From positions 605,926,001 to 605,990,000 of the forward strand of contig NC_091282.1 of the NCBI RefSeq assembly GCF_032444005.1: a stretch of 64,000 nt of DNA, written 5' to 3'. The notes under the pieces are model-generated. The model saw only the letters and a program-made list of their open reading frames with translations. It was not told the origin of the DNA and searched no databases. The stretch's first letter is position 1; each line of letters starts with the position of its first letter. Below, in pieces: positions 22,273-64,000 of this stretch. Made by a program: the position numbers and the translations under genes. The stretch is from Ranitomeya imitator. Taxonomy: Eukaryota.

Positions 22273-22398
22273 ACTACATCTCCCACAGTTCACGGCAGCC
22301 CCGCCTACAGCGAGCCACCTGACTGGCCCTACCCGGAAGTTGAGAGAAGACTGCATCTTCCCGGTAACCGACATGTCTGGTGACGGGAAACCGGAAAT
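22273..22398 (+). promoter_or_regulatory. DPM3: Probable DPM3 promoter and non-coding exon 1
   Basis: ACTACATCTCCCA (ZNF143/THAP11-type motif) 22273-22285; ETS sites CCGGAAGT 22333-40 and CCGGAAAT 22391-98; candidate donor CCG|GTAACC at 22364. Assignment is inferred from motifs and from the known 5'-UTR intron of DPM3. Confidence 0.6.
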
Positions 22399-25300: not shown

Positions 25301-26812
25301 ACCTTTTCTATCCTCTGTCTGTTCAGTAAGTCGGGCCTCACTGTGCTAAATCTATTTAATCTCTGTGTTTGTAATTTTCATCTTTACTCACAGTCATTAT
25401 ATGTGGGGGGCTGCCTTTTCCTTTGGGGAATTTCTCTGAGGCAAGGTAGGCTTTATTTTTCTATCTCTAGGGCTAGCTAGTTTCTTAGGCTGTGTCGAGT
25501 TGCATAGGGAGCGTTTGGAGCAATCCACGGCTATTTCTAGTGTGTGTGATAGGATTAGGGATTGCGGTCAGCAGAGTTCCCACGTCTCAGAGCTCGTCCT
25601 ATATTATTAGTAACTATTAGGTCATTCCGTGTGCTCTTACCCACTAGGTCCATTATTGTCCTTACCACCAGGTCATAACCGTAATGTGCGTGATTGCAGG
25701 GGGTTCTGCCGATTATAGTGTATGGGGGTGTAATGTTTGTGATCACAGGGGGGGCTCTGCCGATTATAGTGTACGGGGGGTGTAATGTGTGTGATTACAG
25801 GGGGCTCCGCCGGTTATAGTGTACGGGGGGTGTAATGTGTGTGATTACAGGGGGCTCCGCCGGTTATAGTGTACGGGGGGGGGGGTGTAATGTGCGTGAT
25901 TGCAGGGGGTTCCGCCGATTATAGTGTAGGGGGGGGGGTATGTAATGTGTGTGATCACAGGGGGCTCCACCGATTATAGTGTACAGGGGGTGTAATGTGT
26001 GTGATTACAGGGGGCTCTGCCGATTATAGTGTACGGGGGGGGGTGTAATGTGTGTGATCACAGGGGGCTCTGCCGATTATAGTGTAGGGGGGGTGTAATG
26101 TGTGTGATTGCAGGGGGCTCCGCCGATTATAGTGCACGGGGGGTGTAATGTGCGTGATTACAGGGGGTTCCGCCGATTATAGTGTACAGGGGGTGTAATG
26201 TGTGTGATTACAGGGGGTTCCGCCGATTATAGTGTACAGGGGGTGTAATGTGTGTGATTACAGGGGGTTCCGCCGATTATAGTGTATGGGGGATGTAATG
26301 TGTGTGATTACAGGGGGCTCCGCCGATTATACTGTACGGGGGGTGTAATGTGTGTGATCACAGGGGGCTCCGCTGATTATAGTGTACGGGGGGTGTAATG
26401 TGTGTGATCACAGGGGGCTCTGACAATTATACTGTACGGGGGGTGTAATATGTGTGATCACAGGGGGCTCCGCTGATTATAGTGTATGGGGGGTGTAATG
26501 TGTGTGATCACAGGGGGCTCCGCTGATTATAGTGTATGGGGGGTGTAATGTGTGTGATCACAGGGGGCTCTGCCAATTATACTGTACGGGGGGTGTAATG
26601 TGTGGTAATGCGCGTGATTACAGGGGGCTCCGCCGATTATACTGTACGGGGGGTGTAATGTGTGTGATCACAGGGGGCTCCGCCGATTATACTGTACGGG
26701 GGGGTGTAATGTGCGTGATTACAGGTGGCTCTGCCGATTATACTGTATGGGGGGTGTAATGTGTGTGATTACAGGTGGCTCTGCCGATTATACTGTACGG
26801 GGGGGGGGGGGG
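22396..26812. repeat. 50-bp minisatellite filling the presumed DPM3 intron
   Basis: Unit TGTAATGTGTGTGATTACAGGGGGCTCCGCCGATTATAGTGTACGGGGGG with a clear 50-nt period; interrupted by a solo LTR. Confidence 0.97.
24871..25680 (+). mobile_element. Solo LTR (810 bp) of the same Gypsy group, closest to Gypsy-2
   Basis: Starts TGTTGTGAATTCTG, ends CATAACC (last base differs from the CA consensus); 6-bp TSD GTAATG at 24865-70 and 25681-86, matching the minisatellite consensus. Confidence 0.92.
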
Positions 26813-30591: not shown

Positions 30592-30774
30592 TATACTATA
30601 TAATACTATAGTGCTGCTATAGAACAGACTGTATAATACTATAGTGCTGCTATACTACATATACTATATAATACTAGTGCTGCTACATCGCCACATCTTT
30701 CTACATTACTACTACTTCTGACTGCTACATCCCCTTACATTACTACTACTGCTCCACCGCCACGTGCTCCTACA

Positions 30775-35074: not shown

Positions 35075-38000
35075 AGCAGAGCCAGAGCGCGGAGAGGAGG
35101 CGGGCGTCAGCACAGGCCAGCCCCACAGCGCCTCCTACACCCGCCACATCACCCGCGGGTCACCGCGACCGCACAGAGGCGACAGCTGCACATCACCCGC
35201 GAGTCACACCCGCCACTAGTGCGTCACTATAGCGGCCGAAATATGAGCAGAACACCCTGAAATGTAACCAAATGCTCTGAAATGTGACCAGAGTGCCCTG
35301 AACCGTGACCAGAGCGCCCTGAAATGTGAGCAGAGCGCCCTGAAATGTGAGCAGACGCCCTGAAATGTGAGCAGACGCCCTGAAATGTGAGCAGACGCCC
35401 TGAATTGTGACCAGAGTGCCATGAAATGTGACCACATCCCACAAAATGTGACCAGAACTCCCCGGAATGTGACCAGATGCCCAAAATGTGACCAGAGCGC
35501 CCTGAAATGTGAGCAGACGCCCTGAATTGTGACCCGAGCACCCTGAAATTGACCAGAGCACCTGGAATGTGACCACATGCTCTGAAATGTGGCCAGAGCT
35601 CCCCAAAATGTGAACAGAGCGCCCTGAAATGTGACCAGAGTGCCACGAAATGTGACCACATCCCACAAAATGTGATCAGAGCGCCCCAAAATGTGACGAG
35701 TGCCCCGAAATGTGACCAGAACTCCCCGAAATGTGAACAGTGTGCCCTGAAATGTGACCAGAACTCCCCGAAATGTGACCAGAGTGCCCTGAAATGTGAC
35801 CAGGACTCCCCGAAATGTGACCAGAGTGCCCTGAAATGTGACCAGAGCTCCCCGAAATGTGACCAGAGTGCCCTGAAATGTGACCAGAGCGCCCTGAAAT
35901 GTGACCAGGACTCCCCGAAATGTGACCAGAGTGCCCTGAAATGTGACCAGAGCTCCCCGAAATGTGACCAGAGCTCCCCGAAATGTGACCAGAGTGCCCT
36001 GAAATGTGACCAGGACTCCCCGAAATGTGACCAGAGTGCCCTGAAATGTGACCAGAGCGCCCTGAAATGTGACCAGAGTGCCACGAAATGTGACCACATC
36101 CCACAAAATGTGATCAGAGCGCCCCAAAATGTGACGAGTGCCCCGAAATGTGACCAGAACTCCCCGAAATGTGAACAGTGTGCCCTGAAATGTGACCAGA
36201 ACTCCCCGAAATGTGACCAGAGTGCCCTGAAATGTGACCAGAGCTCCCCGAAATGTGACCAGAGTGCCCTGAAATGTGACCAGGACTCCCCGAAATGTGA
36301 CCAGAGTGCCCTGAAATGTGACCAGGACTCCCCGAAATGTGACCAGAGTGCCCTGAAATGTGACCAGAGCTCCCCGAAATGTGACCAGAGTGCCCTGAAA
36401 TGTGATCAGAACGGCCGGAAATATGACCAGAGTGCCCCGAAATACTACCAGATGCCCGAAATGTGACCAGAGCTCCCCCAAATGTGACCAGAGCGTCCCC
36501 AAATGTGACTAGAGCACCCCGAAATGTGAGCAGACGCCCTGAATTGTGACCCCAGCACCCTGAAATATGACCACATGCTCTGAAATGTGACAAGGGCGCC
36601 CTGAAATGTCACCACACGTCCCAAAAGTTGATCAGAGCTCCCAGAAATGTGACCACAGCGCCCAAAATGTGACCAGAGTCCCAAAATGTGAACAGAGCGC
36701 CTTTAAATGTTATCAGAGTGCCATGAAATGTGAACACATCCCACAAAATGTGATCAGAGCGCCCCAAAATGTGACCAGAGCTCACTGAAATGTGACCAGA
36801 GTGCCCTGAAATGTGACCAGATGCCTGAAATGTGACCAAAGCGCCCGTAAATGTGGCCAGAGCGTCCCAAAATGTGAACAAAGTGGCCGTAAATGTGACC
36901 AGAGCACCCCAAAATGTGACCAGAGCGCCCTGAAATGTGATCAGAGCTCCCCGAAATGTGAGCAGAGCATCCAGAAATGTGTCCACAACGCCCCAAAATG
37001 TGACCATAGCACCCTGAAATATGGCCAGAGCGTCCCGAAATGTGACCAAAGCGGCCGAAAATGTGACCAGAGCTCCGATAAATGTAACCAGAGTGCCCCA
37101 AAATGTGATCAGAGCTCCCCGAAATGTGACCAGACACCCCAAAATGTGACCAGAGCGTGCCGAAATGTGTCCAGAATGCCTTGAAATGTGACCATAGCTC
37201 CCCGAAATGTGACCAAAGCGCCCCGAAATGTCACCAAAGCGCCCCGAAATATGACCAGATGCCTAGAATGTGACCATAGCTCCCGAAATGTGACCATAGT
37301 GTCCCGAAATGTGATCAGAGCGTCCCAAAATGTGTCCACAACGCCCCAAAATGTGACCATGGTGCCCTGAAATGTGACCAGAGCTCCCTGAGATGTGACC
37401 AGAGTTCCCTGAAATGTGACCAAAGTGCCCAGAAATGTGACCACACACCCCAACATGTGACCAGAGTGTTCCGAAATGTGTCCAGAATGCCCAGAATGTG
37501 ACCAGAGCCCCCGAAATGTGACCAAAGCGCCCCGAAATATGACCAGATGCCCAGAATGTGACCACAGCTCCCGAAATGTGACCAGAGCTCCCCGAAATGT
37601 AACCAGAGCGCCCAGAAATGTGACCATGGCTCTCTGAGATGTGACCAGAGCTCCCCGAAATGAGACCAAAGTGCCCAGAAATGTGACCACACACCCCAAC
37701 GTGAGCAGAGTGTTCCGAAATGTGTCCAGAATGCCCCGAAATGTTATCATAGCGCCCTGAGATGTGACCAGAGCTCCCCGAAATGTGACCAGACACCCCA
37801 AAATGTGACCAGAGCGTGCCGAAATGTGTCCAGAATGCCTTGAAATGTGACCATAGCTCCCCGAAATGTGACCAAAGCGCCCCGAAATATGACCAGGTGC
37901 CCAGAATGTGACGATAGCTCCCGAAATGTGACCATAGCGTCCCAAAATGTGTCCACAACGCCCCAAAATGTAACCCTGAAATGTCACCAGAGCTCCCCGA

Positions 38001-41000
38001 AATGTGACCAAAGTGCCCAGAAATGTGACCATGGCTCCCTGAGATGTGACCAGAGCTCCCCGAAATGTGACCAAAGTGCCCAGAAATGTGACCTCACACC
38101 CCAACATGTGACCAGAGTGTTCCGAAATGTGTCCAGAATGCCCCGAAATGTGACCAAACCGCCCTGAAATGTGACCAAACCGCCCCAAAATGTGACCAGA
38201 TGCCCAGAATGTGATCAGAGCACCCAAAATGTGACCAGAGCACCCGAAATGTGACCAGACACCCCAAAATGTGACCAAAGTGCCTGTAAATGTGACCAGA
38301 GTGCCCCAAAATGTGAACACATGCCCAAAATGTGAACAGAGCGCCCTGAAATGTGACCAGATGCCCAAAATGTGAACAGAGTGCCATGAAATGTGACAAG
38401 AGTGCCCCGAAATTTGACCAGATGCCCGCAATGTGACCATAGTACCCGAAATGTGACCAAAGCACCCCGAAATGTGACCAAAGTGCCCAGAAATATGACC
38501 AGATGCCCGCAATGTGACCATAGCGTCCCGAAATGTGACCAGAGTGCCCTGAAATGTGACCAGGACTCCCCGAAATGTGACCAGAGTGCCCTGAAATGTG
38601 ATCAGAACGGCCGGAAATATGACCAGAGTGCCCCGAAATACTACCAGATGCCCGAAATGTGACCAGAGCTCCCCCAAATGTGACCAGAGCGTCCCCAAAT
38701 GTGACTAGAGCACCCCGAAATGTGAGCAGACGCCCTGAATTGTGACCCCAGCACCCTGAAATATGACCACATGCTCTGAAATGTGACAAGGGCGCCCTGA
38801 AATGTCACCACACGTCCCAAAAGTTGATCAGAGCTCCCAGAAATGTGACCACAGCGCCCAAAATGTGACCAGAGTCCCAAAATGTGAACAGAGCGCCTTT
38901 AAATGTTATCAGAGTGCCATGAAATGTGAACACATCCCACAAAATGTGATCAGAGCGCCCCAAAATGTGACCAGAGCTCACTGAAATGTGACCAGAGTGC
39001 CCTGAAATGTGACCAGATGCCTGAAATGTGACCAAAGCGCCCGTAAATGTGGCCAGAGCGTCCCAAAATGTGAACAAAGCGGCCGTAAATGTGACCAGAG
39101 CACCCCAAAATGTGACCAGAGCGCCCTGAAATGTGATCAGAGCTCCCCGAAATGTGACCAGAGCATCCAGAAATGTGTCCACAACGCCCCAAAATGTGAC
39201 CATAGCACCCTGAAATATGGCCAGAGCGTCCCGAAATGTGACCAAAGCGGCCGAAAATGTGACCAGAGCTCCGATAAATGTAACCAGAGTGCCCCAAAAT
39301 GTGATCAGAGCTCCCCGAAATGTGACCAGACACCCCAAAATGTGACCAGAGCGTGCCGAAATGTGTCCAGAATGCCTTGAAATGTGACCATAGCTCCCCG
39401 AAATGTGACCAAAGCGCCCCGAAATGTCACCAAAGCGCCCCGAAATATGACCAGATGCCTAGAATGTGACCATAGCTCCCGAAATGTGACCATAGTGTCC
39501 CGAAATGTGATCAGAGCGTCCCAAAATGTGTCCACAACGCCCCAAAATGTGACCATGGTGCCCTGAAATGTGACCAGAGCTCCCTGAGATGTGACCAGAG
39601 TTCCCTGAAATGTGACCAAAGTGCCCAGAAATGTGACCACACACCCCAACATGTGACCAGAGTGTTCCGAAATGTGTCCAGAATGCCCAGAATGTGACCA
39701 GAGCCCCCGAAATGTGACCAAAGCGCCCCGAAATATGACCAGATGCCCAGAATGTGACCACAGCTCCCGAAATGTGACCAGAGCTCCCCGAAATGTAACC
39801 AGAGCGCCCAGAAATGTGACCATGGCTCTCTGAGATGTGACCAGAGCTCCCCGAAATGAGACCAAAGTGCCCAGAAATGTGACCACACACCCCAACATGT
39901 GAGCAGAGTGTTCCGAAATGTGTCCAGAATGCCCCGAAATGTTATCATAGCGCCCTGAGATGTGACCAGAGCTCCCCGAAATGTGACCAGACACCCCAAA
40001 ATGTGACCAGAGCGTGCCGAAATGTGTCCAGAATGCCTTGAAATGTGACCATAGCTCCCCGAAATGTGACCAAAGCACCCCGAAATGTGACCAAAGCGCC
40101 CCGAAATATGACCAGGTGCCCAGAATGTGACGATAGCTCCCGAAATGTGACCATAGCGTCCCAAAATGTGTCCACAACGCCCCAAAATGTAACCCTGAAA
40201 TGTCACCAGAGCTCCCCGAAATGTGACCAAAGTGCCCAGAAATGTGACCATGGCTCCCTGAGATGTGACCAGAGCTCCCCGAAATGTGACCAAAGTGCCC
40301 AGAAATGTGACCTCACACCCCAACATGTGACCAGAGTGTTCCGAAATGTGTCCAGAATGCCCCGAAATGTGACCAAACCGCCCTGAAATGTGACCAAACC
40401 GCCCCAAAATGTGACCAGATGCCCAGAATGTGATCAGAGCACCCAAAATGTGACCAGAGCACCCGAAATGTGACCAGACACCCCAAAATGTGACCAAAGT
40501 GCCTGTAAATGTGACCAGAGTGCCCCAAAATGTGAACACATGCCCAAAATGTGAACAGAGCGCCCTGAAATGTGACCAGATGCCCAAAATGTGAACAGAG
40601 TGCCATGAAATGTGACAAGAGTGCCCCGAAATTTGACCAGAACTCCCCGAAATGTGACCAGAGTGCCCTGAAATGTGACCAGAGCTCCCCGAAATCTGAC
40701 TAGAGTGCCCTGAAATGTGATCAGAGCGGCCGGAAATATGACCAGAGCGCCCCAAAATGTGAACAGAGCGCCCAGAAATACTACCAGATGCCCGAAATGT
40801 GACCAGAGCTCCCCCAAATGTGACCAATGCGCCCCCAAATGTGACCAGAGCACCCCAAAATGTGAGCAGACGCCCTGAATTGTGACCCACATGCTCTGAA
40901 ATGTGACCAGGGCGCCCTGAAATGTCACCACACGCCCCAAAAGTTGATCAGAGCTCCCAGAAATGTAACCACAGCGCCCAAAATGTGACCAGAGTCCCAA

Positions 41001-41699
41001 AATGTGAACAGAGCGCCTTTAACCCCTTAGTGACAGCCAATTTGGTACTTAATGACCGAGCCAATTTTTGCAATTCTGACCACTGTCACTTTATGAGGTT
41101 ATAACTCTGGAACGCTTCAACGGATCCCAGTGATTCTAAGATTGTTTTTTCGTGACATATTGTACTTCATGATAGTGGTAACATTTCTTCGATATTACTT
41201 GCGATTATTTATGAAAAAAACGGAAATATGGCGAAAATTTTTAAAATTTTGCAATTTTCAAACTTTGTATTTTTATGCCCTTAAATCAGAGAGATATGTC
41301 ACGAAAAATAGTTAATAAATAACATTTCCCACATGTCTACTTTACATCAGCACAATTTTGGAAACAAATTTTTTTTTTGTTAGGGAGTTATAAGGGTTAA
41401 AAGTTGACCAGCAATTTCTCATTTTTACAACACCATTTTTTTTTAGGGACCACATCACATTTGAAGTCATTTTGAGGGGTCTATATGATAGAAAATAATG
41501 AAGTGTGACACCATTCTAAAAACTACACCCCTCAAGGTTCTCAAAACCACATTCAAGAAGTTTATTAACCCTTTACGTGCTTCACAGGAACTGAAACAAT
41601 GTGGAAGGAAAAAATGAACATATAACTTTTTTTTGCAAACATCTTAATTCAGAACCATTTTTTTTATTTTCACAAGTGTAAAAACAGAAATGTAACCAT

Positions 41700-43977: not shown

Positions 43978-46900
43978 TGCTGTTCTCCTGCCGGCCGGCA
44001 GATGGAGACAGATGGCGGGCGCACTGCGCATGCGCCCGCCATTTTCTTCTGCCGGCGGCCAGGAGGAGCAGCAAGAGGATCCAGGGACACAGGTGAGTAT
44101 TGTAGGGTCCCCGAATCCCCCTATTTCTCTGTCCTCTGATGTGCGATCACATCAGAGGACAGAGAATTACACTTTTTTTTTTTTTGCGGTCGCCGGTAAA
44201 CAGTTAATTACCGGCGATCGCAAAACAGGGGTCGGTAAAACCGACCCCGATCATGCTCTTTGGGGTCTCGGCTACCCCCGGCAGCCGAGACCCCAAAGAT
44301 TCTCGCGGGGCCAGCCGGCGGGCGCACTGCGCATGCGCCCGCCATTTTGAAGATGGCGGCGCCCACCGGGAGACACGAGGAGCATCGGGGGAGCTAGGCG
44401 AGTATTGGGGGGCCACCTGGGACCCCTTTTCTCTGTCCTCCGATGTGCGATCACATCGGAGGACAGAGAAATTAAAAAGAGATCGCGTTTTTTTTGTTTT
44501 TTGTTTTTTTTTCGATCGCTGGTAAACGGTTAATTACCGGCGATCGCAAATGCGGGGTGGGTTAAAAACCCCCCGAATCATGTTCTCTGGGGTCTTGGCT
44601 ACCCCTGGCAGCCGAGACCCCAGAGAAAATCGGCCTCTGGGGGGCGCTATTCACTTTTTCCACAGCGCCGTTAATTAACGGCGCTGTGGTTTAAGTACCC
44701 TTAGCGGCCGCCGTTAAAAGGCGTATCGGCGGTCGCTAAGGGGTTAAATGTGATCAGAGTGCCATGAAATGTGAACACATCCCACAAAATGTGATCAGAG
44801 CGCCCCGAAATGTGACCAGAGCTCACTGAAATGTGACCAGAGCGCCCCAAAATGTGAACAGAGCGCCCAGAAATACTACCAGATGCCCGAAATGTGACCA
44901 GAGCTCCCCCAAATGTGACCAGTGCACCTCGAAATGTGAGCAGACGCCCTGAATTGTGACCCCAGCACCCTGAAATGTGACCACATGCTCTGAAATGTGA
45001 CCAGGGCGCCCTGAAATGTCACCACACGCCCCAAAAGTTGATCAGAGCTCCCAGAAATGTAACCACAGCGCCCGAAATGTGACCAGAGTCCCAAAATGTG
45101 AACAGAGAGCCTTTAAATGTGATCAGAGTGCCATGAAATGTGAACACATCCCACAAAATGTGATCAGAGCACCCCGAAATGTGACCAGAGCTCACTGAAA
45201 TGTGGCCAGAGCGTCCCGAAATGTGAACAAATCGGCCGTAAATGTGACCAGAGCTCCCGTAAATGTGACCAAAGCGCCCTGAAATGTGATCAGAGCTCCC
45301 CGAAATGTGAGCAGAGCATCCAGAAATGTGTCCACAACGCCCCAAAATGTGACCATAGCGCCCTGAAATGTGGCCAGAGCGTCCCGAAATGTGACCAAAG
45401 CGGCCGTAAATGTGACCAGAGCTCCTGTAAATGTGACCAGAGCGCCCCGAAATGTGACTATAGCTCCCCGAAATGTAACCAGAGCGCCCCAAAATGTGAT
45501 CAGAGCTCCCCGAAATGTGACCAGACACCCCAAAATGTGACCAGAGCATGCCAAAATGTGTCCAGAATGCCTTGAAATGTGACCATTGCTCCCCGAAATT
45601 TGACCAAAGCGCCCCGAAATGTGACCAAAGCGTCCCGAAATATGACCAGATGCCTAGAATGTGACCATAGCGTCCCGAAATGTGATCAGATCGTCCCAAA
45701 ATGTGTCCACAACGCCCCAAATTGTGACCATGGCGCCCTGAAATGTGACCAGAGCTCCCCGAAATGTAACCAGAGCACCCCGAAATGTGACCAAAGTGCT
45801 CAGAAATGTGACCAGAGCTCCCTGAGATGTGACCAGAGCTCCCCGAAATGTGACCAAACCGCCCCGAAATGTGACCAGATGCCCAGAGATATGACCAGAT
45901 GCCCAGAATGTGATCAGAGCACCCAAAATGTGACCAGAGTGCCCCAAAATGTTACCAAAGTGCCTGTAAATGTGACCAGAGTGCCCCGAAATGTGAACAG
46001 ATGCCCAAAATGTGAACAGAGCGCCCTGAAATGTGACCAGATGCCCAAAATGTGAGCAGAGCGCCCTGAAATGTGACCAGAGTGCAATGAAATGTGACCA
46101 CATCCCACAAAATGTGATCAGAGTGCCCCGAATTGTGACCAGAACTCCCCAGAATGTGACAAGAGTGCCCCGAAATGTGACCAGACACCCCAAAATGTGA
46201 CCAAAGTGCCCAGAAATAGGACCAGATGCCCGCAATGTGACCATAGCTTCCGAAATGTGACCAAAGTGCCCAGAAATATGACCAGATGCCCGAAATGTGA
46301 CCATAGTGCCCGAAATGTGACCAAAGTGTCCCGAAATGTGACCAAAGTGCCCAGAAATATGACCAGAGTGCCCCAAAATGTTACCAAAGTGCCTGTAAAT
46401 GTGACCAGAGTGCCCCGAAATGTGAACAGATGCCGAAAATGTGAACAGAGCGCCCTGAAATGTGACCAGATGCCCAAAATGTGAACAGAGCGCCCTGAAA
46501 TGTGACCACATCCCACAAAATGTGACCATAGCTCCCTGAAATGTGACCAGAGCTCCCCGAAATGTGACCAGAGTGCCCTGAAATGTGATCAGAGCAGCCG
46601 GAAATATGACCAAAGCGCCCCAAAATGTGAACAGAGCGCCCAGAAATACTACCAGATGCCCGAAATGTGACCAGAGCGCCCCCAAATGTGACCAGAGCAC
46701 CCCGAAGTGTGGGCAGACGCCCTGAATTGTGACCCCAGCACCCTGAAATGTGACCACATGCTCTGAATTGTGACCAGGGCGCCCTGAAATGTCACCACAC
46801 GCCCCAAAAGTTGATCAGAGCTCCCAGAAATGTGACCACAGCGCCCGAAATGTGACCAGAGTCCCAAAATGTGAACAGAGCGCCTTTAAATGTTATCAGA

Positions 46901-49900
46901 GTGCCATGAAATGTGAACACATCCCACAAAATGTGATCAGAGCGCCCCAAAATGTGACCAGAGCTCACTGAAATGTGACCAGAGTGCCCTGAAATGTGAC
47001 CAGATGCCTGAAATGTGACCAAAGCGCCCGTAAATGTGGCCAGAGCGTCCCAAAATGTGAACAAAGCGGCCGTAAATGTGACCAGAGCACCCCAAAATGT
47101 GACCAGAGCGCCCTGAAATGTGATCAGAGCTCCCTGAAATGTGAGCAGAGCATCCAGAAATGTGTCCACAACGCCCCAAAATGTGACCATAGCGCCCTGA
47201 AATATGGCCAGAGCGTCCCGAAATGTGACCAAAGCGGCCGAAAATGTGACCAGAGCTCCGATAAATGTGACCAGAGCGCCCCGAAATGTGACTATAGCTC
47301 CCCGAAATGTAACCAGAGTGCCCCAAAATGTGATCAGAGCTCCCCGAAATGTGACCAGACACCCCAAAATGTGACCAGAGCGTGCCGAAATGTGTCCAGA
47401 ATGCCTTGAAATGTGACCATAGCTCCCCGAAATGTGACCAAAGTGCCCCGAAATGTGACCAAAGCGCCCCGAAATATGACCAGATGCCTAGAATGTGACC
47501 ATAGCTCCCGAAATGTGACCATAGTGTCCCGAAATGTGATCAGAGCGTCCCAAAATGTGTCCACAACGCCCCAAAATGTGACCATGGTGCCCTGAAATGT
47601 GACCAGAGCTCCCTGAGATGTGACCAGAGTTCTCTGAAATGTGACCAAAGTGCCCAGAAATGTGACCACACACCCCAACATGTGACCAGAGTGTTCCGAA
47701 ATGTGTCCAGAATGCCCCGAAATGTGATCATTGCGCCCTGAGATGTGACCAGAGCTCCCCGAGATGTGACCAAACCGCCCCGAAATGTGACCAGATGCCC
47801 AGAGATATGACCAGATGCCCAGAATGTGATCAGAGCACCCAAAATGTAACCAGTGCCCCAAAATGTGACCAGAGCATCCGAAATGTGACCAGACACCCCA
47901 AAATGTGACCAAAGTGCCCAGAAATATGACCAGATGCCCGCAATGTGACCATAGCACCCGAAATGTGACCAAAGCACCCCGAAATGTGACCAAAGTGCCC
48001 AGAAATATGACCAGATGCCTGCAATGTGACCATAGCGTCCCGAAATGTGACCAAAGTGCCCAGAAATATGACCAGAGTGCCCCAAAATGTTACCAGACAC
48101 CCCAAAATGTGACCAAAGTGCCCAGAAATATGACCAGATGCTCGCAATGTGACTATAGCACCCGAAATGTGACCAAAGCACCCCGAAATGTGACCAAAGT
48201 GCCCAGAAATATGACCAGATGCCCGCAATGTGACCATAGCGCCCGAAATGTGACCAAAGCGTCCCGAAATGTGACCAAAGTGCCCAGAAATATTACCAGA
48301 GTGCCCCAAAATGTTACCAAAGTGCCTGTAAATGTGACCAGAGTGCCCCGAAATGTGAACAGATGCCCAAAATGTGAACAGAGCGCCCTGAAATGTGACC
48401 AGATGCCCAAAATGTGAGCAGAGCGCCCTGAAATGTGACCACATCCCACAGAATGTGATCAGAGCGCCCCGAATTGTGACCAGAACTCCCCGGAATGTGA
48501 CAAGAGTGCCCCGAAATGTGACCAGACACCCCAAAATGTGACCAAAGTGCCCAGAAATAGGACCAGATGCCCGCAATGTGACCATAGCTTCCGAAATGTG
48601 ACCAAAGTGCCCAGAAATATGACCAGATGCCCGAAATGTGACCATAGTGCCCGAAATGTGACCAAAGTGTCCCGAAATGTGACCAAAGTGCCCAGAAATA
48701 TGACCAGAGTGCCCCAAAATGTTACCAAAGTGCCTGTAAATGTGACCAGAGTGCCCCGAAATGTGAACAGATGCCGATAATGTGAACAGAGCACCCTGAA
48801 ATGTGACCAGATGCCCAAAATGTGAACAGAGCGCCCTGAAATGTGACCACATCCCACAGAATGTGACCATAGCTCCCTGAAATGTGACCAGAGCTCCCCG
48901 AAATGTGACCAGAGTGCCCTGAAATGTGATCAGAGCGGCCGGAAATATGACCAAAGCGCCCCAAAATGTGAACAGAGCGCCCAGAAATACTACCAGATGC
49001 CCGAAATGTGACCAGAGCGCCCCCAAATGTGACCAGAGCACCCCGAAGTGTGAGCAGACGCCCTGAATTGTGACCCCAGCACCCTGAAATGTGACCACAT
49101 GCTCTGAAATGTGACCAGGGCGCCCTGAAATGTCACCACACGCCCCAAAAGTTGATCAGAGCTCCCAGAAATGTGACCACAGCGCCCGACATGTGACCAG
49201 AGTCCCAAAATGTGAACAGAGCGCCTTTAAATGTTATCAGAGTGCCATGAAATGTGAACACATCCCACAAAATGTGATCAGAGCGCCCCAAAATGTGACC
49301 AGAGCTCACTGAAATGTGACCAGAGTGCCCTGAAATGTGACCAGATGCCTGAAATGTGACCAAAGCGCCCGTAAATGTGGCCAGAGCGTCCCAAAATGTG
49401 AACAAAGCGGCCGTAAATGTGACCAGAGCACCCCAAAATGTGACCAGAGCGCCCTGAAATGTGATCAGAGCTCCCCGAAATGTGAGCAGAGCATCCAGAA
49501 ATGTGTCCACAACGCCCCAAAATGTGACCACAGCACCCTGAAATATGGCCAGAGCGTCCCGAAATGTGACCAAAGCGGCCGAAAATGTGACCAGAGCTCC
49601 GATAAATGTGACCAGAGCGCCCCGAAATGTGACTATAGCTCCCCGAAATGTAACCAGAGTGCCCCAAAATGTGATCAGAGCTCCCCGAAATGTGACCAGA
49701 CACCCCAAAATGTGACCAGAGCGTGCCGAAATGTGTCCAAAATGCCTTGAAATGTGACCATAGCTCCCCAAAATGTGACCAAAGCGCCCCGAAATGTCAC
49801 CAAAGCGCCCCGAAATATGACCAGATGCCTAGAATGTGACCATAGCTCCCGAAATGTGACCATAGTGTCCCGAAATGTGATCAGAGCGTCCCAAAATGTG

Positions 49901-52900
49901 TCCACAATGCCCCAAAATGTGACCATGGTGCCCTGAAATGTGACCAGAGTTCCCTGAAATGTGACCAAAGTGCCCAGAAATGTGACCACACACCCCAACA
50001 TGTGACCAGAGTGTTCCGAAATGTGTCCAGAATGCCCCGAAATGTGATCATTGCGCCCTGAGATGTGACCAGAGCTCCCCGAGATGTGACCAAACCGCCC
50101 CGAAATGTGACCAGATGCCCAGAGATATGACCAGATGCCCAGAATGTGATCAGAGCACCCAAAATGTGACCAGTGCCCCAAAATGTGACCAGAGCATCCA
50201 AAATGTGACCAGACACCCCAAAATGTGACCAAAGTGCCCAGAAATATGACCAGATGCCCGCAATGTGACCATAGCACCCGAAATGTGACCAAAGCACCCC
50301 GAAATGTGACCAAAGTGCCCAGAAATATGACCAGATGCCCGCAATGTGACCATAGCGTCCCGAAATGTGACCTAAGTGCCCAGAAATATGACCAGAGTGC
50401 CCCAAAATGTTACCAGACACCCCAAAATGTGACCAAAGTGCCCAGAAATATGACCAGATGCTCGCAATGTGACTATAGCACCCGAAATGTAACCAAAGCA
50501 CCCCGAAATGTGACCAAAGTGCCCAGAAATATGACCAGATGCCCGCAATGTGACCATAGCGCCCGAAATATGACCAAAGTGCCCAGAAATATTACCAGAG
50601 TGCCCAAAAATGTTACCAAAGTGCCTGTAAATGTGACCAGAGTGCCCCGAAATGTGAACAGATGCCCAAAATGTGAACAGAGCGCCCTGAAATGTGACCA
50701 GATGCCCAAAATGTGAGCAGAGCGCCCTGAAATGTGACCAGAGTGCAATGAAATGTGACCACATCCCACAAAATGTGATCAGAGCGCCCCGAATTGTGAC
50801 CAGAACTCCCCGGAATGTGACAAGAGTGCCCCGAAATGTGACCAGACACCCCAAAATGTGACCAAAGTGCCCAGAAATAGGACCAGATGCCCGCAATGTG
50901 ACCAAAGTGCCCAGAGATATGACCAGATGCCCGAAATGTGACCATAGTGCCCGAAATGTGACCAAAGTGTCCCGAAATGTGGCCAAAGTGCCCAGAAATA
51001 TGACCAGAGTGCCCCAAAATGTTACCAAAGTGCCTGTAAATGTGACCAGAGTGCCCCGAAATGTGAACAGATGCCGATAATGTGAACAGAGCGCCCTGAA
51101 ATGTGACCAGATGCCCAAAATGTGAACAGAGCGCCCTGAAATGTGACCACATCCCACAAAATGTGACCATAGCTCCCTGAAATGTGACCAGAGCTCCCCG
51201 AAATGTGACCAGAGTGCCCTGAAATGTGATCAGAGCGGCCGGAAATATGACCAAAGCGCCCCAAAATGTGAACAGAGCGCCCAGAAATACTACCAGATGC
51301 CCGAAATGTGACCAGAGCGCCCCCAAATGTGACCAGAGCACCCCGAAGTGTGGGCAGACGCCCTGAATTGTGACCCCAGCACCCTGAAATGTGACTAAAG
51401 TGCCCAGAAATATGACCAGATGCCCGCAATGTGACCATAGCGTCCCGAAATGTGACCAAAGTGCCCAGAAATATGACCAGAGTGCCCCAAAATGTTACCA
51501 AAGTGCCTGTAAATGTGACCAGAGTGCCCCGAAATGTGAACAGGTGCCCAAAATGTGACCAGAGTGCCCTGAAATGTGACCAGATGCCTGAAATGTGACC
51601 AAAGCGCCCGTAAATGTGGCCAGAGCGTCCCGAAATGTGAACAAAGCGGCCGTAAATGTGACCAGAGCTCCCGTAAATGTGACCAGAGCGCCCCAAAATG
51701 TGACCAGAGCGCCCTGAAATGTGATCAGAGCTCCCCAAAATGTGAGCAGAGCATCCAGAAATGTGTCCACAACGCCCCGAAATGTGGCCAGAGCATCCCG
51801 AAATGTGGCCAGAGCGTCCCGAAATGTGACCAAAGCGGCCATAAATGTAACCAGAGCTCCCGTAAATGTGACCAGAGCTCCCGTAAATGTGACCAGAGCG
51901 CCCCGAAATGTGACCAGAGCGCCCCGAAATGTGACTATTGCTCCCCGAAATGTAACCAGAGCGCCCCGAAATGTGATCAGAGCTCCCCAAAATGTGACCA
52001 GACACCCCAAAATGTGACCAGAGCGTGCCGAAATGTGTCCAGAATGCCTTGAAATGTGACCATAGCTCCCCGAAATGTGACCAAAGCGCCCCGAAATGTG
52101 ACCAAAGCGCCCCGAAATATGACCAGATGCCTAGAATGTGACCATAGCTCCCGAAATGTGACCATAGTGTCCCGAAATGTGATCAGAGCGTCCCAAAATG
52201 TGTCCACAACGCCCCAAAATGTGACCATGGTGCCCTGAAATGTGACCAGAGCTCCCTGAGATGTGACCAGAGTTCCCTGAAATGTGACCACACACCCCAA
52301 CATGTGACCAGAGTGTTCCGAAATGTGTCCAGAATGCCCCGAAATGTGATCATAGCGCCCTGAGATGTGACCAGAGCTCCCCGAGATGTGACCAAACCGC
52401 CCCGAAATGTGACCAGATGCCCAGAGATATGACCAGATGCCCAGAATGTGATCAGAGCACCCAAAATGTGACCAGTGCCCCAAAATGTGACCAGAGCATC
52501 CGAAATGTGACCAGACACCCCAAAATGTGACCAAAGTGCCCAGAAATATGACCAGATGCCCGCAATGTGACCATAGCACCCGAAATGTGACCAAAGCACC
52601 CCGAAATGTGACCAAAGTGCCCAGAAATATAACCAGATGCCCGCAATGTGACCATAGCGTCCCGAAATGTGACCAAAGTGCCCCGAAATATGACCAGAGT
52701 GCCCCAAAATGTTACCAAAGTGCCTGTAAATGTGAACAGAGTGCCCCGAAATGTGACCAGATGCCTGAAATGTGACCAAAGCGCCCGTAAATGTGGCCAG
52801 AGCGTCCCGAAATGTGAACAAAGCGGCCGTAAATGTGACCAGAGCTCCCGTAAATGTGACCAGATATCCCCCCAAAATGTGACCAGAGCGCCCCGAAATG

Positions 52901-53347
52901 TGATCAGAGCTCCCCAAAATGTGAGCAGAGCATCCAGAAATGTGTCCACAACGCCCCGAAATGTGGCCAGAGCGTCCCGAAATGTGACCAAAGCGGCCGT
53001 AAATGTAACCAGAGCTCCCGTAAATGTGACCAGAGCTCCCGTAAATGTGACCAGAGCGCCCCGAAATGTGACCAGAGCGCCCCGAAATGTGAATATTGCT
53101 CCCCGAAATGTAACCAGAGCGCCCCGAAATGTGATCAGAGCTCCCCGAAATGTGACCAGACACCCCAAAATGTGACCAGAGCGTCCCAAAATGTGTCCAC
53201 AACACCCCAAAATGTGACCATGGCACCCTGAAATGTGACCAGAGCTCCCCGAAATGTGACCAAAGTGTCCAGAAATGTGACCACACACCCCAACATGTGA
53301 CCAGAGTGTTCAGAAATGTGTCCAGAATGCCCCGAAATGTGATCATA

Positions 53348-53636
53348 GGCTACGTCCACATTAGCGTTGCGTTGGGCGCAGCCGCGGCGACGCATGCATC
53401 ATGCGCCCTTATATTTGACATGGGGATGCATGGACATGCGTTGTCTTGCGTTTTTTGTGACGCATGCGTCATTTTTGGCGCAAGTGTCAGGGCGCAGAGG
53501 ACGCAGCAAGTTGCATTTTTTTGCTTCCAAAAGCAAGCCAAAAATGGACGCATGCGTCACAAAACCATGCGTTTTTGCATGCGTTGTGCGTTGCGTCGCC
53601 GACGCAACACACAACAACGCAAATGTGAACGTAGCC
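53348..53636. mobile_element. Harbinger-type MITE, copy 1 in the satellite
   Basis: TIR GGCTACGTYCACATT; 3-bp TSD ATA; related to the MITE at 10056. Confidence 0.88.
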
Positions 53637-54356
53637 ATAGCGCCCTGAGATGTGATAAGAGCTCTCCGAAATGTGACCAAACTGCCACGAAATGTCACCA
53701 GATGCCCAGAGATATGACCAGATGCCCAGAATGTGATCAGAGCACCCAAAATGTGACCAGAGCGCCCCGAAATGTGACTAGAGCACCCGAAATGTGACCA
53801 GACACCCCAAAATGTGACCAAAGTGCCCAGAAATATGACCAGATGCCCGCAATGTGACCATAGCACCCGAAATGTGACCAAAGCACCCCGAAATGTGACC
53901 AAAGTGCCCAGAAATATGACCAGATGCCCGCAATGTGACCATAGCGCCCGAAATGTGACCTAAGTACCCAGAAATATGACCAGAGTGCCCCAAAATGTTA
54001 CCAAAGTGCCTGTAAATGTGACCAGAGTGCCCCGAAATGTGAACAGATGCCCAAAATGTGACCATAGCTCCCCGAAATGTGACCATAGCTCCCCGAAATG
54101 TGACCAAAGCGCCCCGAAATGTGACCAAGGTGCCCCGAAATGTGACCAGATGCCCAGAATGTGACCATAGCTCCCGAAATGTGTCCACAACGTCCCAAAA
54201 TGTGTTCACAACGCCCCAAAATGTGACCATGGCACCCTGAAATGTGACCAGAGCTCCCCGAAATGTGACCAAAGTGCCTAGAAATGTGACCACACACCCC
54301 AACATGTGACCAGAGTGTTCAGAAATGTGTCCAGAATGCCCCGAAATGTGATCATA

Positions 54357-54654
54357 GGCTACGTTCACATTAGCGTTGCGTCGGGCGCAGCCGCGGCGAC
54401 GCATGCATCATGCGCTCCTATATTTAACATGGGGACGCATGGACATGCGTTGTCTTGCGTTTTGTGACGCATGCGTCATTTTTGGCGCAAGTGTCAGGGC
54501 GCAGAGGACGCAGCAAGTTGCATTTTTTTGCGTCCAAAAGCAAGCCAAAAATGGACGCATGCGTCACAAAACCATGCGTTTTTGCATGCGTTTTGCATGC
54601 GTTGTGCGTTGCGTCGCCGACGCAACACACAACAACGCAAATGTGAACGTAGCC
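54357..54654. mobile_element. Harbinger-type MITE, copy 2 in the satellite
   Basis: Same TIR, same ATA TSD and same flanking satellite sequence as copy 1, 1009 bp downstream. Confidence 0.88.
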
Positions 54655-56645
54655 ATAGCGCCCTGAGATGTGACCATAGCTCCCCGAAATGTGACCAAAC
54701 CGCCCCGAAATGTGACCAGATGCCCAGAGATATGACCAGATGCCCAGAATGTGATCAGAGCACCCAAAATGTGATCAGAGCGCCCCAAAATGTGACTAGA
54801 GCACCCGAAATGTGACCAGACACCCCAAAATGTGACCAAAGTGCCCAGAAATATAACCAGATGCCCGCAATGTGACCATAGCACCCGAAATGTGACCAAA
54901 GCACCCCGAAATGTGACCAAAGTGCCCAGAAATATGACCAGATGCCCGCAATGTGACCATAGCGCCCAAAATGTGACCAAAGCGTCCCGAAATGTGACCT
55001 AAGTGCCCAGAAATATGACCAGAGTGCCCCAAAATGTTACCAAAGTGCCTGTAAATGTGAACAGATGCCCAAAATGTGAACAGAGCGCCCTGAAATGTGA
55101 TCAGTGTCATGAAATGTGACCACATCCCACAAAATGTGATCAGAGCGCCCTGAAGTGTGACCAGATGCCCAAAATGTGAACAGAGCGCCCTGAAATATGA
55201 TCAGAGTCATGAAATGTGACCACATCCCACAAAATGTGATCAGAACGCCCCAAAATATGACCAGAGTGCCCTGAAATGTGACCAAAGCGCCTGTAAATGT
55301 GTCTCGGGTGTCCCAAAATGTGACCAAAGCGGACGGAAATATGACCACAAATGTGACCAGATGCCCGTAAATGTGACCAGAACGCCCTGAATTGTGAACA
55401 AAGCACCCCGACATGTGACCAAGGTGACCCGAAATGTAACCAGAAGCCAGAAATGTGACCATATTGCCCAAAATGTGACCACAGCGCCCCTAAATCTGAC
55501 CCGAGCACCCTGAAATGTGAGCAGACTCCCCGAAATGTGACCAGACACCTCAAAATGTAACAAGTGTTCCGAAATGTGTCCAGAATGCCCCGAAATGTGA
55601 TCATAGCGCCCTGCGATGTGACCAGAGCTCCCCCAAATGTGACCAAAGCGCCCCGAAATGTGACCAAAGTGCCCAGAAATATGACCAGAATGTGACCATA
55701 GCACCCGAAATGTGATCAGAGCACCCGAAATGTTACCAAAGCGCCCCGAAATGTGATCAGAGCACCTGAAATGTGACCAGACACCCCTAAATGTGACCAG
55801 AGCGTTCCGAAATGTGTCCAGAATGCCCTGAAATGTGACCATAGCGCCCTGAAATGTGACCAGAGCACCCCGAAATGTGACCATAACACCCCGAATTGTG
55901 AACAAAGCACCCCGAAATGTGACCAGAGCACCACCGAAATATGACCAAGGTGACCCGAAATGTGACCAGAAGCCAGAAATGTGACCTGTTGCCCAAAATG
56001 TGACCACAGCGCCCCTAAAACTGACCCGAGCACCCTGAAATGTGAGCAAATGCCCCAAAATGTGACCAGATGCCCGAAATGTGACCAGAGTGCCCTGAAA
56101 TGTAACCAGAGTGCCCTGAAATGTGACCAGAACGCCCCTAAATCTGACCCGTGCACCCTGAAATGTGATTGGAATGCCCCGAAATTAGAATAGGCTCCCC
56201 AAAGTATGAACAGAACACCCTTACATGTGATCAAAGAGCCCCAAAATGTGTCCACAGCACCCCGAAATTTGACCAGAGCGCCCCTAAATGTGACTCGAGC
56301 ACCTTGAAATGTGACTAGATGCCCTAAAATGTGACCAGAGTGCCCTGCAATGTGACCAGAACGCCCCTTAATCTGACCCGTGCACCCTTAAATGTGACCG
56401 GAATGCCCCGAAATGTGACTAGGCTCCCCAAAATATGATCAGAACGTCCTTACATGTTATCAGAGAGACCCAAAATGTGACTAGAGCTCCCTGAAATGGG
56501 ACCAGAGCGCCCCTAAATCTGACTCGAGCACTTTGAAATGTGACTAGAAGCCCCAAAATGTTACCAGACGCCCCAATATGTGACCAGACTCCCTGAAATA
56601 TGATCAGAGCACCCCGAAATGTGACTAGACTCGTATGACCTGCTC

Positions 56646-60836: not shown

Positions 60837-61008
60837 TTACACAAGAAAATTCCATTGCAGACAATATGATCTGTGATAACAAAAATTCCCCATTAAATGC
60901 CACCTGCTTATCCCAGCAGGAAGTACGGCGGCGTCTAAAAATCACTAAAATTGACAAATCTCCGGGTCCGGAAGGGATACACCCCCGAGTACTGCAGGAA
61001 TTAAGTAC

Positions 61009-61085
61009 TTTGGGGTTCTGCTCTGAGGCAAGATAGTATTCCTATTTCCATCTTTAGGGGTATTTAGTCCTCCGGCTGTGACGAG
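61009..61085 (+). repeat. Short internal fragment of another Gypsy-type LTR
   Basis: Resembles the CTCTGAGGCAAG...TTTCTATCT...GG block of the local LTRs; abuts the broken CR1. Confidence 0.45.
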
Positions 61086-64000
61086 TGTTGTGAATTCTGT
61101 GGCTGAATTCACTCCTGTGGTCACAATTGGTACTGCAGCTTCTGAGCTTCCTCCTTCAGGTGTTCTGGTGAGCTCGTTAACTGCTTCATTACTTAACTCC
61201 GCCTGATGCAGCTATCCTTGTTCCTTGTCAATGTTTCAGTGTTGGATCTGAGCTTCTCCTGATTGTTCCTGTGACCTGCTGCTCTGTATAGCTAAGTGCT
61301 TTTTGCTTTTTTGTTGCTTTTTTTCTGTCCAGCTTGTCTTTTGTTTTTCTGGAAGCTCTGAGACGCAAAGGGTGTACCGCCGTGCCGTTAGTTCGGCACG
61401 GTGGGTTTTTTTTTTTGCCCCCTTTGCGTGGTTTTGCTTTAGGGTTTTTTGTAGACTGCAAAGTTCGCTTTACTGTCCTCGCTCTGTCCTAGAATATCGG
61501 GCCCCACTTTGCTGAATCTATTTCATCCCTACGTTTTGTCTTTTCATCTTACTCACAGTCATTATATGTGGGGGGCTGCCTTTTCCTTTGGGGAATTTCT
61601 CTGGGGCAAGTCAGGCCTATTTTTCTATCTTCAGGCTAGCTAGTTTCTTAGGCTGTGCCGAGTTGCCTAGGTAGTTGTTAGGCGCAATCCACAGCCGCTT
61701 TTAGTTGTGTTTAGGATAGGATCAGGTGTGCAGTCTACAGAGTTTCCACGTCTCAGAGCTCGTTCTTGTATTTTTGGGTATTTGTCAGATCACTGTGTGC
61801 GCTCTGATCGCTAAGCACACTGTGTTTCTGGATTGCCTTCATAACACCTGTCATTAGCAAACATAACAGTACAAGGAGCCAAAACTAATGATTCTCAATA
61901 GAGGGAAAGAAAAAGTTCTGACATCATTTTTTTTTTTTTTTTTTTCTGCTCTGTGTTCACTTTTTTTTTTTCCCCTAGACATTTGGGTGATTTTGGACAC
62001 AGGTGTGGACATGGATATTCAGGGTCTGTGCTCTTCAATGGATAATCTCGTTATAAATGTACAAAAAATTCAAGATACTATTGATCAGAAATCTATGTTA
62101 GAACCAAGAATTCCTATTCCTGATTTGTTTTTTGGAGATAGAACTAAGTTTCTAAGTTTCAAAAATAATTGTAAGCTATTTCTGGCCTTGAAACCTCATT
62201 CTTCTGGTAATCCTATTCAACAGGTTTTGATTATTATTTCTTTTTTGCGCGGCGACCCTCAAGACTGGGCATTTTCTCTTGCGCCAGGAGACCCTGCATT
62301 GAGTAGTGTCGATGCGTTTTTCCTGGCGCTCGGATTGCTGTACGATGGGCCTAATTCAGTGGATCAGGCTGAGAAAAATTTGCTGGCTTTGTGCCAGGGT
62401 CAGGATGATATAGAAGTATATTGTCAGAAATTTAGGAAATGGTCAGTACTCACTCAGTGGAATGAATCTGCGCTGGCAGCTTTGTTCAGAAAGGGTCTCT
62501 CTGAGGCTCTTAAGGATGTCATGGTGGGATTTTCTATGCCTGCTGGTTTGAATGAGTCTTTGTCTTTGGCCATTCAGATCGGTCGACGCTTGCGCGAGCG
62601 TAAATCTGTGCACCATTTGGCGGTACTGCCTGAGGTTAAACCTGAGCCTATGCAGTGCGATAGGACTATGACTAGAGTTGAACGGCAGGAATACAGACGT
62701 CTGAATGGTCTGTGTTTCTACTGTGGTGATTCCACTCATGCTATTTCTGATTGTCCTAAGCGCACTAAGCGGTCCGCTAGGTCTGCCGTCATTGGTACTG
62801 TACAGTCCAAATTCCTTCTGTCCATTACCTTGATATGCTCTTTGTCGTCGTTTTCTGTCATGGCGTTTGTGGATTCGGGCGCTGCCCTGAATCTGATGGA
62901 TTTGGATTATGCTAAACGTTGTGGGTTTTTCTTGGAGCCTTTGCGGTGTCCTATTCCATTGAGAGGAATTGATGCTACACCTTTGGCCAAGAATAAACCT
63001 CAATACTGGGCCCAGCTGACCATGTGCATGGCTCCTGCACATCAGGAAGTTATTCGCTTTCTGGTGTTGCATAATCTGCATGATGTGGTCGTGTTGGGGT
63101 TGCCATGGCTACAAACCCATAATCCAGTATTGGATTGGAATTCCATGTCGGTATCCAGCTGGGGTTGTCAGGGGGTACATGGTGATGTTCCATTTTTGTC
63201 GATTTCGTCATCCACCCCTTCTGAGGTCCCAGAGTTCTTGTCTGATTATCAGGATGTATTTGAAGAGCCCAAGTCCGATGCTCTACCTCCGCATAGGGAT
63301 TGTGATTGTGCTATCAATTTGATTCCTGGTAGTAAATTCCCTAAAGGTCGATTATTTAATTTATCCGTGCCCGAACACGCCGCTATGCGCAGTTATGTGA
63401 AGGAATCCCTGGAGAAGGGACATATTCGCCCATCGTCATCACCACTGGGAGCAGGGTTCTTCTTTGTAGCCAAGAAGGATGGTTCGCTGAGACCGTGTAT
63501 TGATTACCGCCTTCTTAATAAGATCACTGTTAAATTTCAGTATCCCTTGCCATTGTTATCTGACTTGTTTGCTCGGATTAAGGGGGCTAGTTGGTTCACT
63601 AAGATAGATCTTCGTGGTGCGTATAATCTGGTGAGAATCAGGCAAGGAGATGAATGAAAAACTGCATTCAATACGCCCGAGGGTCATTTTGAGTATCTAG
63701 TGATGCCGTTCGGACTTGCCAATGCTCCATCTGTGTTTCAGTCTTTTATGCATGACATCTTCCGTGAGTATCTGGATAAATTCCTGATTGTTTACTTGGA
63801 TGACATTTTGATCTTCTCAGATGATTGGGAGTCTCATGTGAAGCAGGTCAGAATGGTTTTTCAGGTCCTGCGTGCTAACTCTTTGTTTGTGAAGGGATCA
63901 AAGTGTCTCTTCGGTGTGCAGAAAGTTTCATTTTTGGGGTTCATCTTTACCCCTTCTACTATCGAGATGGATCCAGTTAAGGTCCAAGCCATCCAGGATT
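61086..64000 (+). mobile_element. Gypsy-3: same subfamily as Gypsy-1, runs off the right edge
   Basis: 5' LTR from 61086 ending at 61846 or 61868; followed by GTACAAGGAGCC as in Gypsy-1. Confidence 0.95.
61888..64000 (+). pseudogene. Gypsy-3 gag-pol, single frame, with a nonsense codon in RT
   Basis: Gag-CCHC-PR-RT in one ORF; TGA at 63655-57 where the sister copies have TGG (GDEWKTAF); RT homology continues in frame. Confidence 0.92.

Follow-up and report, generated by a model that had tools for sequence, protein, structure and literature searches.

A domain of 405 nt in the long terminal repeats (LTRs) of a Ty3/Gypsy retrotransposon family of the frog Ranitomeya imitator is very probably a selected structure of the sense-strand RNA. 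The domain was analysed in a window of 64,000 nucleotides (assembly GCF_032444005.1, contig NC_091282.1, positions 605,926,001 to 605,990,000 of the forward strand), in which self-BLAST found six copies of one LTR family, with the ends TGTTGTG...CATAACA and 6-bp target-site duplications (TSDs). All coordinates refer to this window, and the helices are numbered on copy A, the 5' LTR that starts at 61086. The best explanation for the whole, which we hold with moderate confidence, is a leader RNA domain of a self-priming chromodomain Ty3/Gypsy element, which would compact an unusually long R-U5 region.

Helices and covariation of the LTR domain

A first-pass annotation, made from the letters of the window alone, had proposed that complementary blocks of R-U5 pair into a large multi-helix RNA, and all five of its helices were found in place. 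These are the outer helix AGCTCTGAGACG/CGTCTCAGAGCT, a 12-nt inverted repeat (61354-61365 / 61749-61760); TGTAGACTGCA/TGCAGTCTACA, an 11-nt inverted repeat (61450-61460 / 61729-61739); ACGCAAAGGG/CCCTTTGCGT, a 10-nt inverted repeat (61363-61372 / 61420-61429); CCGCCGTGCCG/CGGCACGGTGG, an 11-nt hairpin stem with one G.U pair (61377-61387 / 61394-61404); and GGCTGTG/CACAGCC (61651-61657 / 61690-61696). Between 61340 and 61780, three 11-nt inverted repeats were observed, compared with a mean of 0.008 in 1000 dinucleotide shuffles, and 13 8-mer inverted repeats, compared with 0.6 in the shuffles; a chance origin of the inverted repeats is excluded. The minimum free energy (MFE) of the domain is -154 kcal/mol on the plus strand (z = -5.4), and all five helices are present in the MFE fold.

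The block variants described for the other five LTR copies of the window were recovered in the alignment as well. In the 5' LTR at 15102, a private G-to-A change breaks one pair of the TGCTGACCGCAA helix, which is intact in the sister 3' LTR; the 3' LTR at 20116 carries CATGGCT, which is still wobble-compatible; and a 14-nt deletion in the solo LTR has removed the 3' half of the inner hairpin.

The elements of the domain in copy A are as follows.

61329-61352, plus strand: small hairpin CCAGC...(G)CTGG that adjoins the outer helix on its 5' side, from RNAalifold on 12 5' LTRs; it is invariant, so its covariation evidence is nil
61354-61364, plus strand: 5' strand of P1, the outer helix (AGCTCTGAGAC), from pair counts and the inverted-repeat check
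61365-61427, plus strand: P2, a long hairpin with lower stem GCAAAGGG/CCCTTTGC and upper stem CCGCCGTGCCG/CGGCACGGTGG; both partners changed in 9 of 15 tested pairs
61428-61431, plus strand: 5' strand of P1b (GTGG), which pairs with CCAC at 61746-61749; invariant in subfamilies A-G
61450-61460, plus strand: 5' strand of P3 (TGTAGACTGCA); 4 of 11 pairs changed on both sides, with G.U intermediates
61555-61617, plus strand: core of highest primary-sequence conservation (CACAGTCATTATATGTGGGGGGCTGCC...TCTCTGGGGCAAGTCAGGC), near-invariant in all subfamilies including H; its only canonical poly(A) hexamer is AATATA, in subfamily G
61651-61696, plus strand: P5 hairpin, with outer stem GGCTGTG/CACAGCC (with G.U variants) and inner stem GAGTTGC/GCAATC (three pairs changed on both sides)
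61729-61739, plus strand: 3' strand of P3 (TGCAGTCTACA)
61746-61760, plus strand: contiguous 3' strand of P1b (CCAC) and P1 (GTCTCAGAGCT)

In the consensus fold of the six window copies, P1 (11 bp), P2 and P1b (4-5 bp) form a three-way junction with zero unpaired linker bases; P2 sits between the 5' strands of P1 and P1b, whose shared 3' strand is CCAC-GTCTCAGAGCT. Within the domain closed in this way lie P3, an 11-bp long-range helix, and interior hairpins such as P5. The remark that the outer 5' block overlaps the neighbouring helix was right, as the final bases of the P1 5' strand can extend P2 instead. A C-G to U-A change in subfamily G favours P1 pairing over the P2 extension, and a switch between P1 and P2 may be possible. 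The near-invariant core at 61555-61617 could be a poly(A) region or a protein-binding site; it carries ...CAGTCATTATATGTGGGGGGCTGCC...TTTCTCTGRGGCAAG..., and a related GAGGCAAGTAGG motif occurs in a distant element (L009, described below).

The window itself represents three or four lineages of the family. From eight other R. imitator loci, 22 further LTR copies were fetched through gag relatives, including near-identical sisters of A, variants of B, D and F at 87-92% identity, and two subfamilies that are new relative to the window, namely G (83% identity to F) and H, whose LTR can be aligned to the window copies over the 3' half of the domain alone (~71%). In the alignment of the 28 domains, 47 pairs were tested, drawn from the five helices of the first-pass annotation and the GTGG/CCAC junction helix; a control in which the 3' partners were slid by 1-3 columns was run alongside. 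Paired cells amounted to 94.8% (33-47% in the slid control), 19 of the 47 pairs had changed on both sides (1-7 in the slid controls), and the covariation score was 0.334 (0.05-0.12 in the slid controls). A random-partner null, in which each 5' column was kept and its partner was drawn from the variable columns with the phylogeny preserved, gave 1.9 +/- 1.3 co-varying pairs and a maximum of 8 in 5000 draws, compared with 16 observed. A larger alignment had been named beforehand as the test of a selected structure, and the covariation in it, far above both the slid and the random-partner controls, bears that claim out.

When subfamily H was left out, 98.8% of the cells were paired and 10 pairs had changed on both sides (0-2 in the slid control); the copies from outside the window, taken alone, gave 93.4% and 19 pairs. 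Individual pairs of the outer helix illustrate the course of the changes: one is A-U in A, B and D, G.U in three separate sublineages (F, B2 and D1) and G-C in F1, G and H, and a second has turned from C-G to U-A in three of the four subfamily G copies. Unconstrained RNAalifold on the 28-domain alignment predicted 72 pairs, including 25 in which both partners had changed, and added to the GGCTGTG hairpin an inner stem with three more co-varying pairs.

Subfamily H keeps the domain layout with other letters. Its P1 is GCTCTAG(T)GG/CCCTAGAGC and its P1b is GATGG/CCATC; at the P2 position stands a hairpin of unrelated sequence with the upper stem CTCATGTTCCA/TGGAACATGAG; and P3 of H2 is GCTGACCGCG/CGCGGTCAGC, with one C.A mismatch in copy H1_L002a. 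A profile hidden Markov model of the domain, searched against all fetched DNA, returned no further divergent copies, and a scan of 61000-62000 on both strands against Rfam 15 returned no covariance-model match at E values up to 1.

Sense strand and selection on pairing

Perfect inverted repeats fold on both strands, and the minus strand of the domain also beats its shuffles (MFE -123 kcal/mol, z = -4.5), as would be expected if the selected structure lay in the complementary strand, either in minus-strand strong-stop DNA or in an antisense transcript. The wobble pairs decide otherwise. The helices were defined from the Watson-Crick blocks of copy A, and the definition is therefore neutral between the strands; in these symmetrically defined helices, the other copies contain 58 G.U cells versus 7 A.C cells. 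Among states common to both LTRs of an element, six positions are G.U and none is A.C; every inherited wobble is a G.U pair of the plus strand that would read as a C.A mismatch on the other strand. Folding energy, too, favours the plus strand, by 31 kcal/mol. What was selected is the sense RNA, rather than complementary DNA or an antisense transcript, and a structure selected in the complementary strand is highly improbable.

The same copies separate inherited differences from later decay. The two LTRs of an element are identical at insertion, and differences between sister LTRs therefore represent neutral decay. In ten element pairs, 13 post-insertion differences fell in paired columns; 10 of them break a pair and 3 make a G.U. 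Inherited alternative states in the helices of the first-pass annotation were canonical in 26 cases and non-canonical in 8, most of the latter at helix ends in H, and the contrast in pair-keeping between decay and inheritance is significant (Fisher p = 0.0017). Such a contrast would arise if pairing counted during replication but no longer after insertion. Transposons offer this contrast in a convenient form, since differences between subfamilies record selection on the RNA and differences between sister LTRs record neutral decay.

The contrast also bears on whether the helices could lack an RNA function altogether and be passively carried, by chance or as a DNA-level relic such as a small inverted-repeat transposon nested in the ancestral LTR. 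The outer blocks do resemble 12-bp terminal inverted repeats about 400 bp apart. However, no target-site duplication flanks them, and a relic would not account for several nested helices, each with compensatory change, or for post-insertion mutations that break pairs where inherited differences keep them; the shuffles, for their part, never reach the observed number of repeats. We regard this explanation as barely credible. A nested inverted-repeat transposon and chance palindromes were both rejected as candidates, on the decay-versus-inheritance contrast and on the shuffles.

Self-priming context and proposed role of the domain

The domain is nested between three features that point to self-primed reverse transcription.

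61189-61196, plus strand: TATA-like box with a putative promoter role, TTACTTAA here and TATTTAA in other subfamilies; 29-31 nt upstream of the self-primer everywhere
61220-61228, plus strand: predicted RNA 5' end and self-primer 9-mer, GTTCCTTGT in the window copy and GCTCCTTGT in sister copies, followed by the invariant CAATGT
61869-61880, plus strand: primer-binding site (PBS), GT plus ACAAGGAGC(C), directly after the LTR; the gag open reading frame (ORF) starts at 61888

In every subfamily, the 9-10-mer downstream of the TATA-like box is exactly complementary to a site that begins 2 nt past the LTR, and four co-varying versions of primer and PBS exist (GCTCCTTGT, GGCCTCCAGT, GCCAGCTGT and GCCGGCTAT). 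From this arrangement we infer that the transcript starts at the 9-10-mer, at about 61220. RNAalifold on twelve 5' LTRs with their PBS predicted the primer/PBS duplex, in which 6 of 9 pairs have changed on both sides, together with an adjacent invariant duplex of 3-4 bp, TGT(T)/(A)ACA, between the bases after the primer and the LTR end, and, further in, the small hairpin before P1 and the domain itself. The hexamer CAATGT (61229-61234), invariant in all subfamilies, contains the AUG nearest to the predicted RNA 5' end, and pairing is possible between its TGT and the LTR-terminal ACA. About 620 nt separate primer and PBS. When the complete leaders (620-660 nt) were folded one sequence at a time, the MFE structure contained the primer/PBS duplex, P1 and P3 in nine of nine copies (A, B, B1, D, G, H1 and H2), and the leader fold reaches -222 kcal/mol (z = -5.8). 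The first-pass annotation had placed the domain in R-U5, and the predicted start at about 61220 and the PBS at 61869-61880 do enclose it, the R-U5 being itself a putative one. It had further proposed that the structure brings the RNA 5' end close to the PBS, and a fold nested in a co-varying duplex of 5' end and PBS fits that proposal.

Self-priming has been dissected experimentally in the fission-yeast element Tf1, where primer and PBS are close, whereas the vertebrate cases rest on sequence signatures. As described in PMC7175516, PMC10085805 and PMC4600332, the Tf1 RNA pairs through its first 11 nt with the PBS, and RNase H cuts them off to serve as the primer of reverse transcription; for this, the 5' untranslated region has to form a 'pretzel' of three duplexes (PMC10085805). 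Self-priming is reported in Tf1/sushi elements from fungi to vertebrates (PMC6317226, PMC4600332). The frog family shares with these elements a PBS just past the 5' LTR that can pair with the first 9-10 nt of the predicted transcript in place of a tRNA, a predicted extra short duplex between the LTR-end ACA and the TGT after the primer, and a chromodomain at the integrase C-terminus of a Gypsy element. It differs in that primer and PBS are ~620 nt apart, with a loop that holds the 405-nt, separately closed, co-varying multi-helix domain, and in that the third pretzel duplex is not clearly found; cofold runs gave no consistent duplex between the PBS-downstream side and the leader.

A distant element (L009; Logan contig SRR32659518, 81-626) combines a gag 45% identical to that of the window with a 531-bp LTR and a leader of ~350 nt; its self-primer GCTGGCTAAT is found 29 nt downstream of a TTAAAAGG box and complements ATTAGCCAGC, located just beyond the LTR. 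Neither L009 nor L010, both short Logan contigs with distant gag relatives, showed LTR similarity to the window copies.

The domain could act as a large insert in the loop of the pretzel leader. P1 would close the domain and shorten the path from primer to PBS from ~620 nt to ~220 nt of linkers, ~400 nt being removed; the 5' self-primer and the PBS would then pair in cis across the collapsed leader, and the RNA 5' end might be cleaved and prime minus-strand synthesis as in Tf1. That scaffolding of self-priming is the main job of the domain is a tentative assignment with a little less than an even chance. As the gag AUG follows the PBS by 8-20 nt, the same closure would also bring the cap into its vicinity, which makes a second role in packaging or translation possible.

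A further-reaching version, which we consider unlikely, would make the domain an obligatory, modular 'distance-collapsing' scaffold that allows a 620-nt R-U5, with the overlapping P1/P2/P1b junction as a closed/open switch coupling translation, priming and packaging. Under this equally doubtful switch, the closed form would have the primer on the PBS and the cap beside the gag AUG, as opposed to the open form. If true, the scaffold or switch domain would be the first covariation-supported large leader domain in a vertebrate LTR retrotransposon.

Long-range helices around the PBS are familiar from retroviruses, in the U5 inverted-repeat (U5-IR) and U5-leader stems of avian retroviruses and in the U5-AUG pairing of HIV-1. 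As in the frog family, long-range pairing within R-U5 and the leader organises the primer/PBS region just upstream of gag; however, retroviruses use a tRNA primer, their helices are tight around the PBS, and they have no sequence relation to the frog domain. Such helices of retroviral 5' leaders are mentioned in PMC3601003. The genomic RNAs of Ty1 and Ty3 have 5' structures for priming, cyclisation, dimerisation and packaging, mapped by selective 2'-hydroxyl acylation analysed by primer extension (PMC3592414, PMC6844567, PMC7969010, PMC11381356). They resemble the frog case as LTR-retrotransposon RNAs with a conserved 5' structure, but they use tRNA-iMet and reach into gag or pair the 5' with the 3' end, whereas the frog domain lies wholly in the LTR and has comparative support only.

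The Ty1 and retroviral examples suggest another reading, in which the domain is chiefly a packaging or dimerisation signal recognised by Gag/nucleocapsid, like retroviral Psi or the Ty1 5' region, and its place between primer and PBS is incidental. A conserved, sense-specific structure in the leader just upstream of gag would suit such a signal, as would the near-invariant 60-nt interior sequence with G-runs, a candidate protein-binding site, and structured 5' regions do govern dimerisation and packaging of Ty1 (PMC6844567, PMC3592414). On the other hand, no palindromic loop of the dimer-initiation type was noticed, though none was searched for, and the domain is wholly inside the LTR, so any part within R recurs at the RNA 3' end. 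As the chief function we rate packaging as unlikely; the packaging reading and the priming scaffold are not mutually exclusive.

Control of gag translation, by a shunt-like ribosome bypass or a switch between translation and replication, is less probable still. In caulimoviruses, folding of the 35S leader (~600 nt) places the 5' region beside the first long ORF at the base of the hairpin, allowing ribosome shunt. The frog leader is of similar length and closure, which is a resemblance only, and the short ORF that ends just before the hairpin base is not conserved in the frog. Closing 620 nt would put the cap beside the gag AUG, the leader is very stable, and upstream AUGs number 2-4 per ~640-nt leader in A, B and D and more in B1, G and H, one AUG at +12 being invariant. 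However, the short ORF at +12 differs in length among subfamilies (1, 6, 24 or 127 codons) and stops well away from the P1 base, unlike that of a shunt leader, and pairing with the LTR end accounts equally well for the invariant CAATGT.

Several points count against the interpretation as a self-priming leader domain. All support is drawn from a single family in a single species, with about eight sublineages represented. In subfamily H, P2 cannot be aligned in the strict sense, and the 'double changes' counted there mean no more than that a hairpin of similar size stands at the corresponding position; the stability of the H domain is ordinary (z = -1.65). The transcription start and the polyadenylation site, and hence the R/U5 boundary, are positions that we infer; no conserved poly(A) hexamer of the AATAAA type was found in R-U5, apart from AATATA in subfamily G, and if polyadenylation took place inside the domain, half of it would be left in the 3'-end copy of R. 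A candidate for an extra closing helix in the 5' and 3' linkers, GTGRCCTG/CAGRTCAY, showed no compensatory change and has a C.A mismatch in A and B. The L009 leader is not exceptionally stable (z = -1.2), and a large domain is therefore no general requirement for self-priming. Finally, the present evidence does not discriminate between priming, packaging and translation.

Self-priming and the small pretzel have already been described for Tf1/sushi elements, so only the large inner domain appears to be undescribed; the 405-nt co-varying inner domain and the very long primer-PBS span appear new within the known class of structured self-priming leaders. The frog family, abundant and apparently recently active, suggests that self-priming can go with a very long leader if the leader is folded away. 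It also offers a natural series of compensatory variants, and the structure is therefore directly testable.

Source elements and neighbouring repeats

The LTR copies of the window and their domains, placed by self-BLAST and alignment, are the following.

61086-61868, plus strand: 5' LTR of subfamily A (TGTTG...ACA), 783 bp including a 22-nt terminal extension; the element runs past the window end
12029-11275 (5') and 6749-5994 (3'), minus strand: LTRs of a subfamily B element
11362-11761, minus strand: domain in the 5' LTR of the subfamily B element
6081-6481, minus strand: domain in the 3' LTR of the subfamily B element
15102-15919 (5') and 20116-20933 (3'), plus strand: LTRs of a subfamily D element with open gag-protease and pol reading frames
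15436-15834, plus strand: domain in the 5' LTR of the subfamily D element
20450-20848, plus strand: domain in the 3' LTR of the subfamily D element
24871-25680: solo LTR of subfamily F, with the domain at 25208-25593 (plus strand) and a 14-nt deletion in P2

The 3' end of the subfamily A LTR, previously set at 61846, had to be moved to 61868, as two sister elements at other genomic loci carry the same 22-nt extension in their 3' LTRs, with TSDs. In the public assembly, the sequence after the 3' LTR of one subfamily A element is a run of N (L005:32620 onward).

The element at 15102-20933 looks like a young copy, possibly still competent, with an LTR identity of 99.3%, the TSD GGGCAC, and gag-protease (15942-17366) and pol (17180-20284) both open. 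Its pol ORF matches the Pfam families RVT_1, RT_RNaseH, Integrase_H2C2, rve, SH3_Tf2-1 and Chromo; with reverse transcriptase (RT), RNase H, integrase, SH3_Tf2-1 and a chromodomain in pol, these are therefore chromodomain-bearing Ty3/Gypsy elements. Its ORF1 matches Retrotrans_gag and an aspartyl protease, both a little under the Pfam cut-offs. The nearest gag proteins in the public collection are all from Ranitomeya imitator (assembly GCA_958301615.1), and the window gag protein has no exact-sequence record in public assemblies. The gag relatives bear capsid Pfam families of the PEG10/RTL type, which would fit a sushi-like origin.

Directly upstream of the LTR at 61086, 79 nt (61008-61086) match the middle of the domain of the same LTR (profile positions 230-308), so the insertion hit an older LTR fragment belonging to the element's own family; this fragment is preceded by an RT fragment of the long interspersed nuclear element type at about 60950-61000. 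The solo LTR at 24871-25680 (TSD GTAATG) splits a 50-bp satellite array at 22398-26804. A degenerate satellite with a 21-bp unit (CCGAAATGTGACCAGAGCGCC) takes up about 17 kb of the window, as one array at 35236-41017 and another at 44746-56629 (span 35236-56629), and other satellite arrays have units of 29 bp (at 21245), 34/112 bp (at 31898), 59 bp (at 30728) and 20 bp (at 58823).

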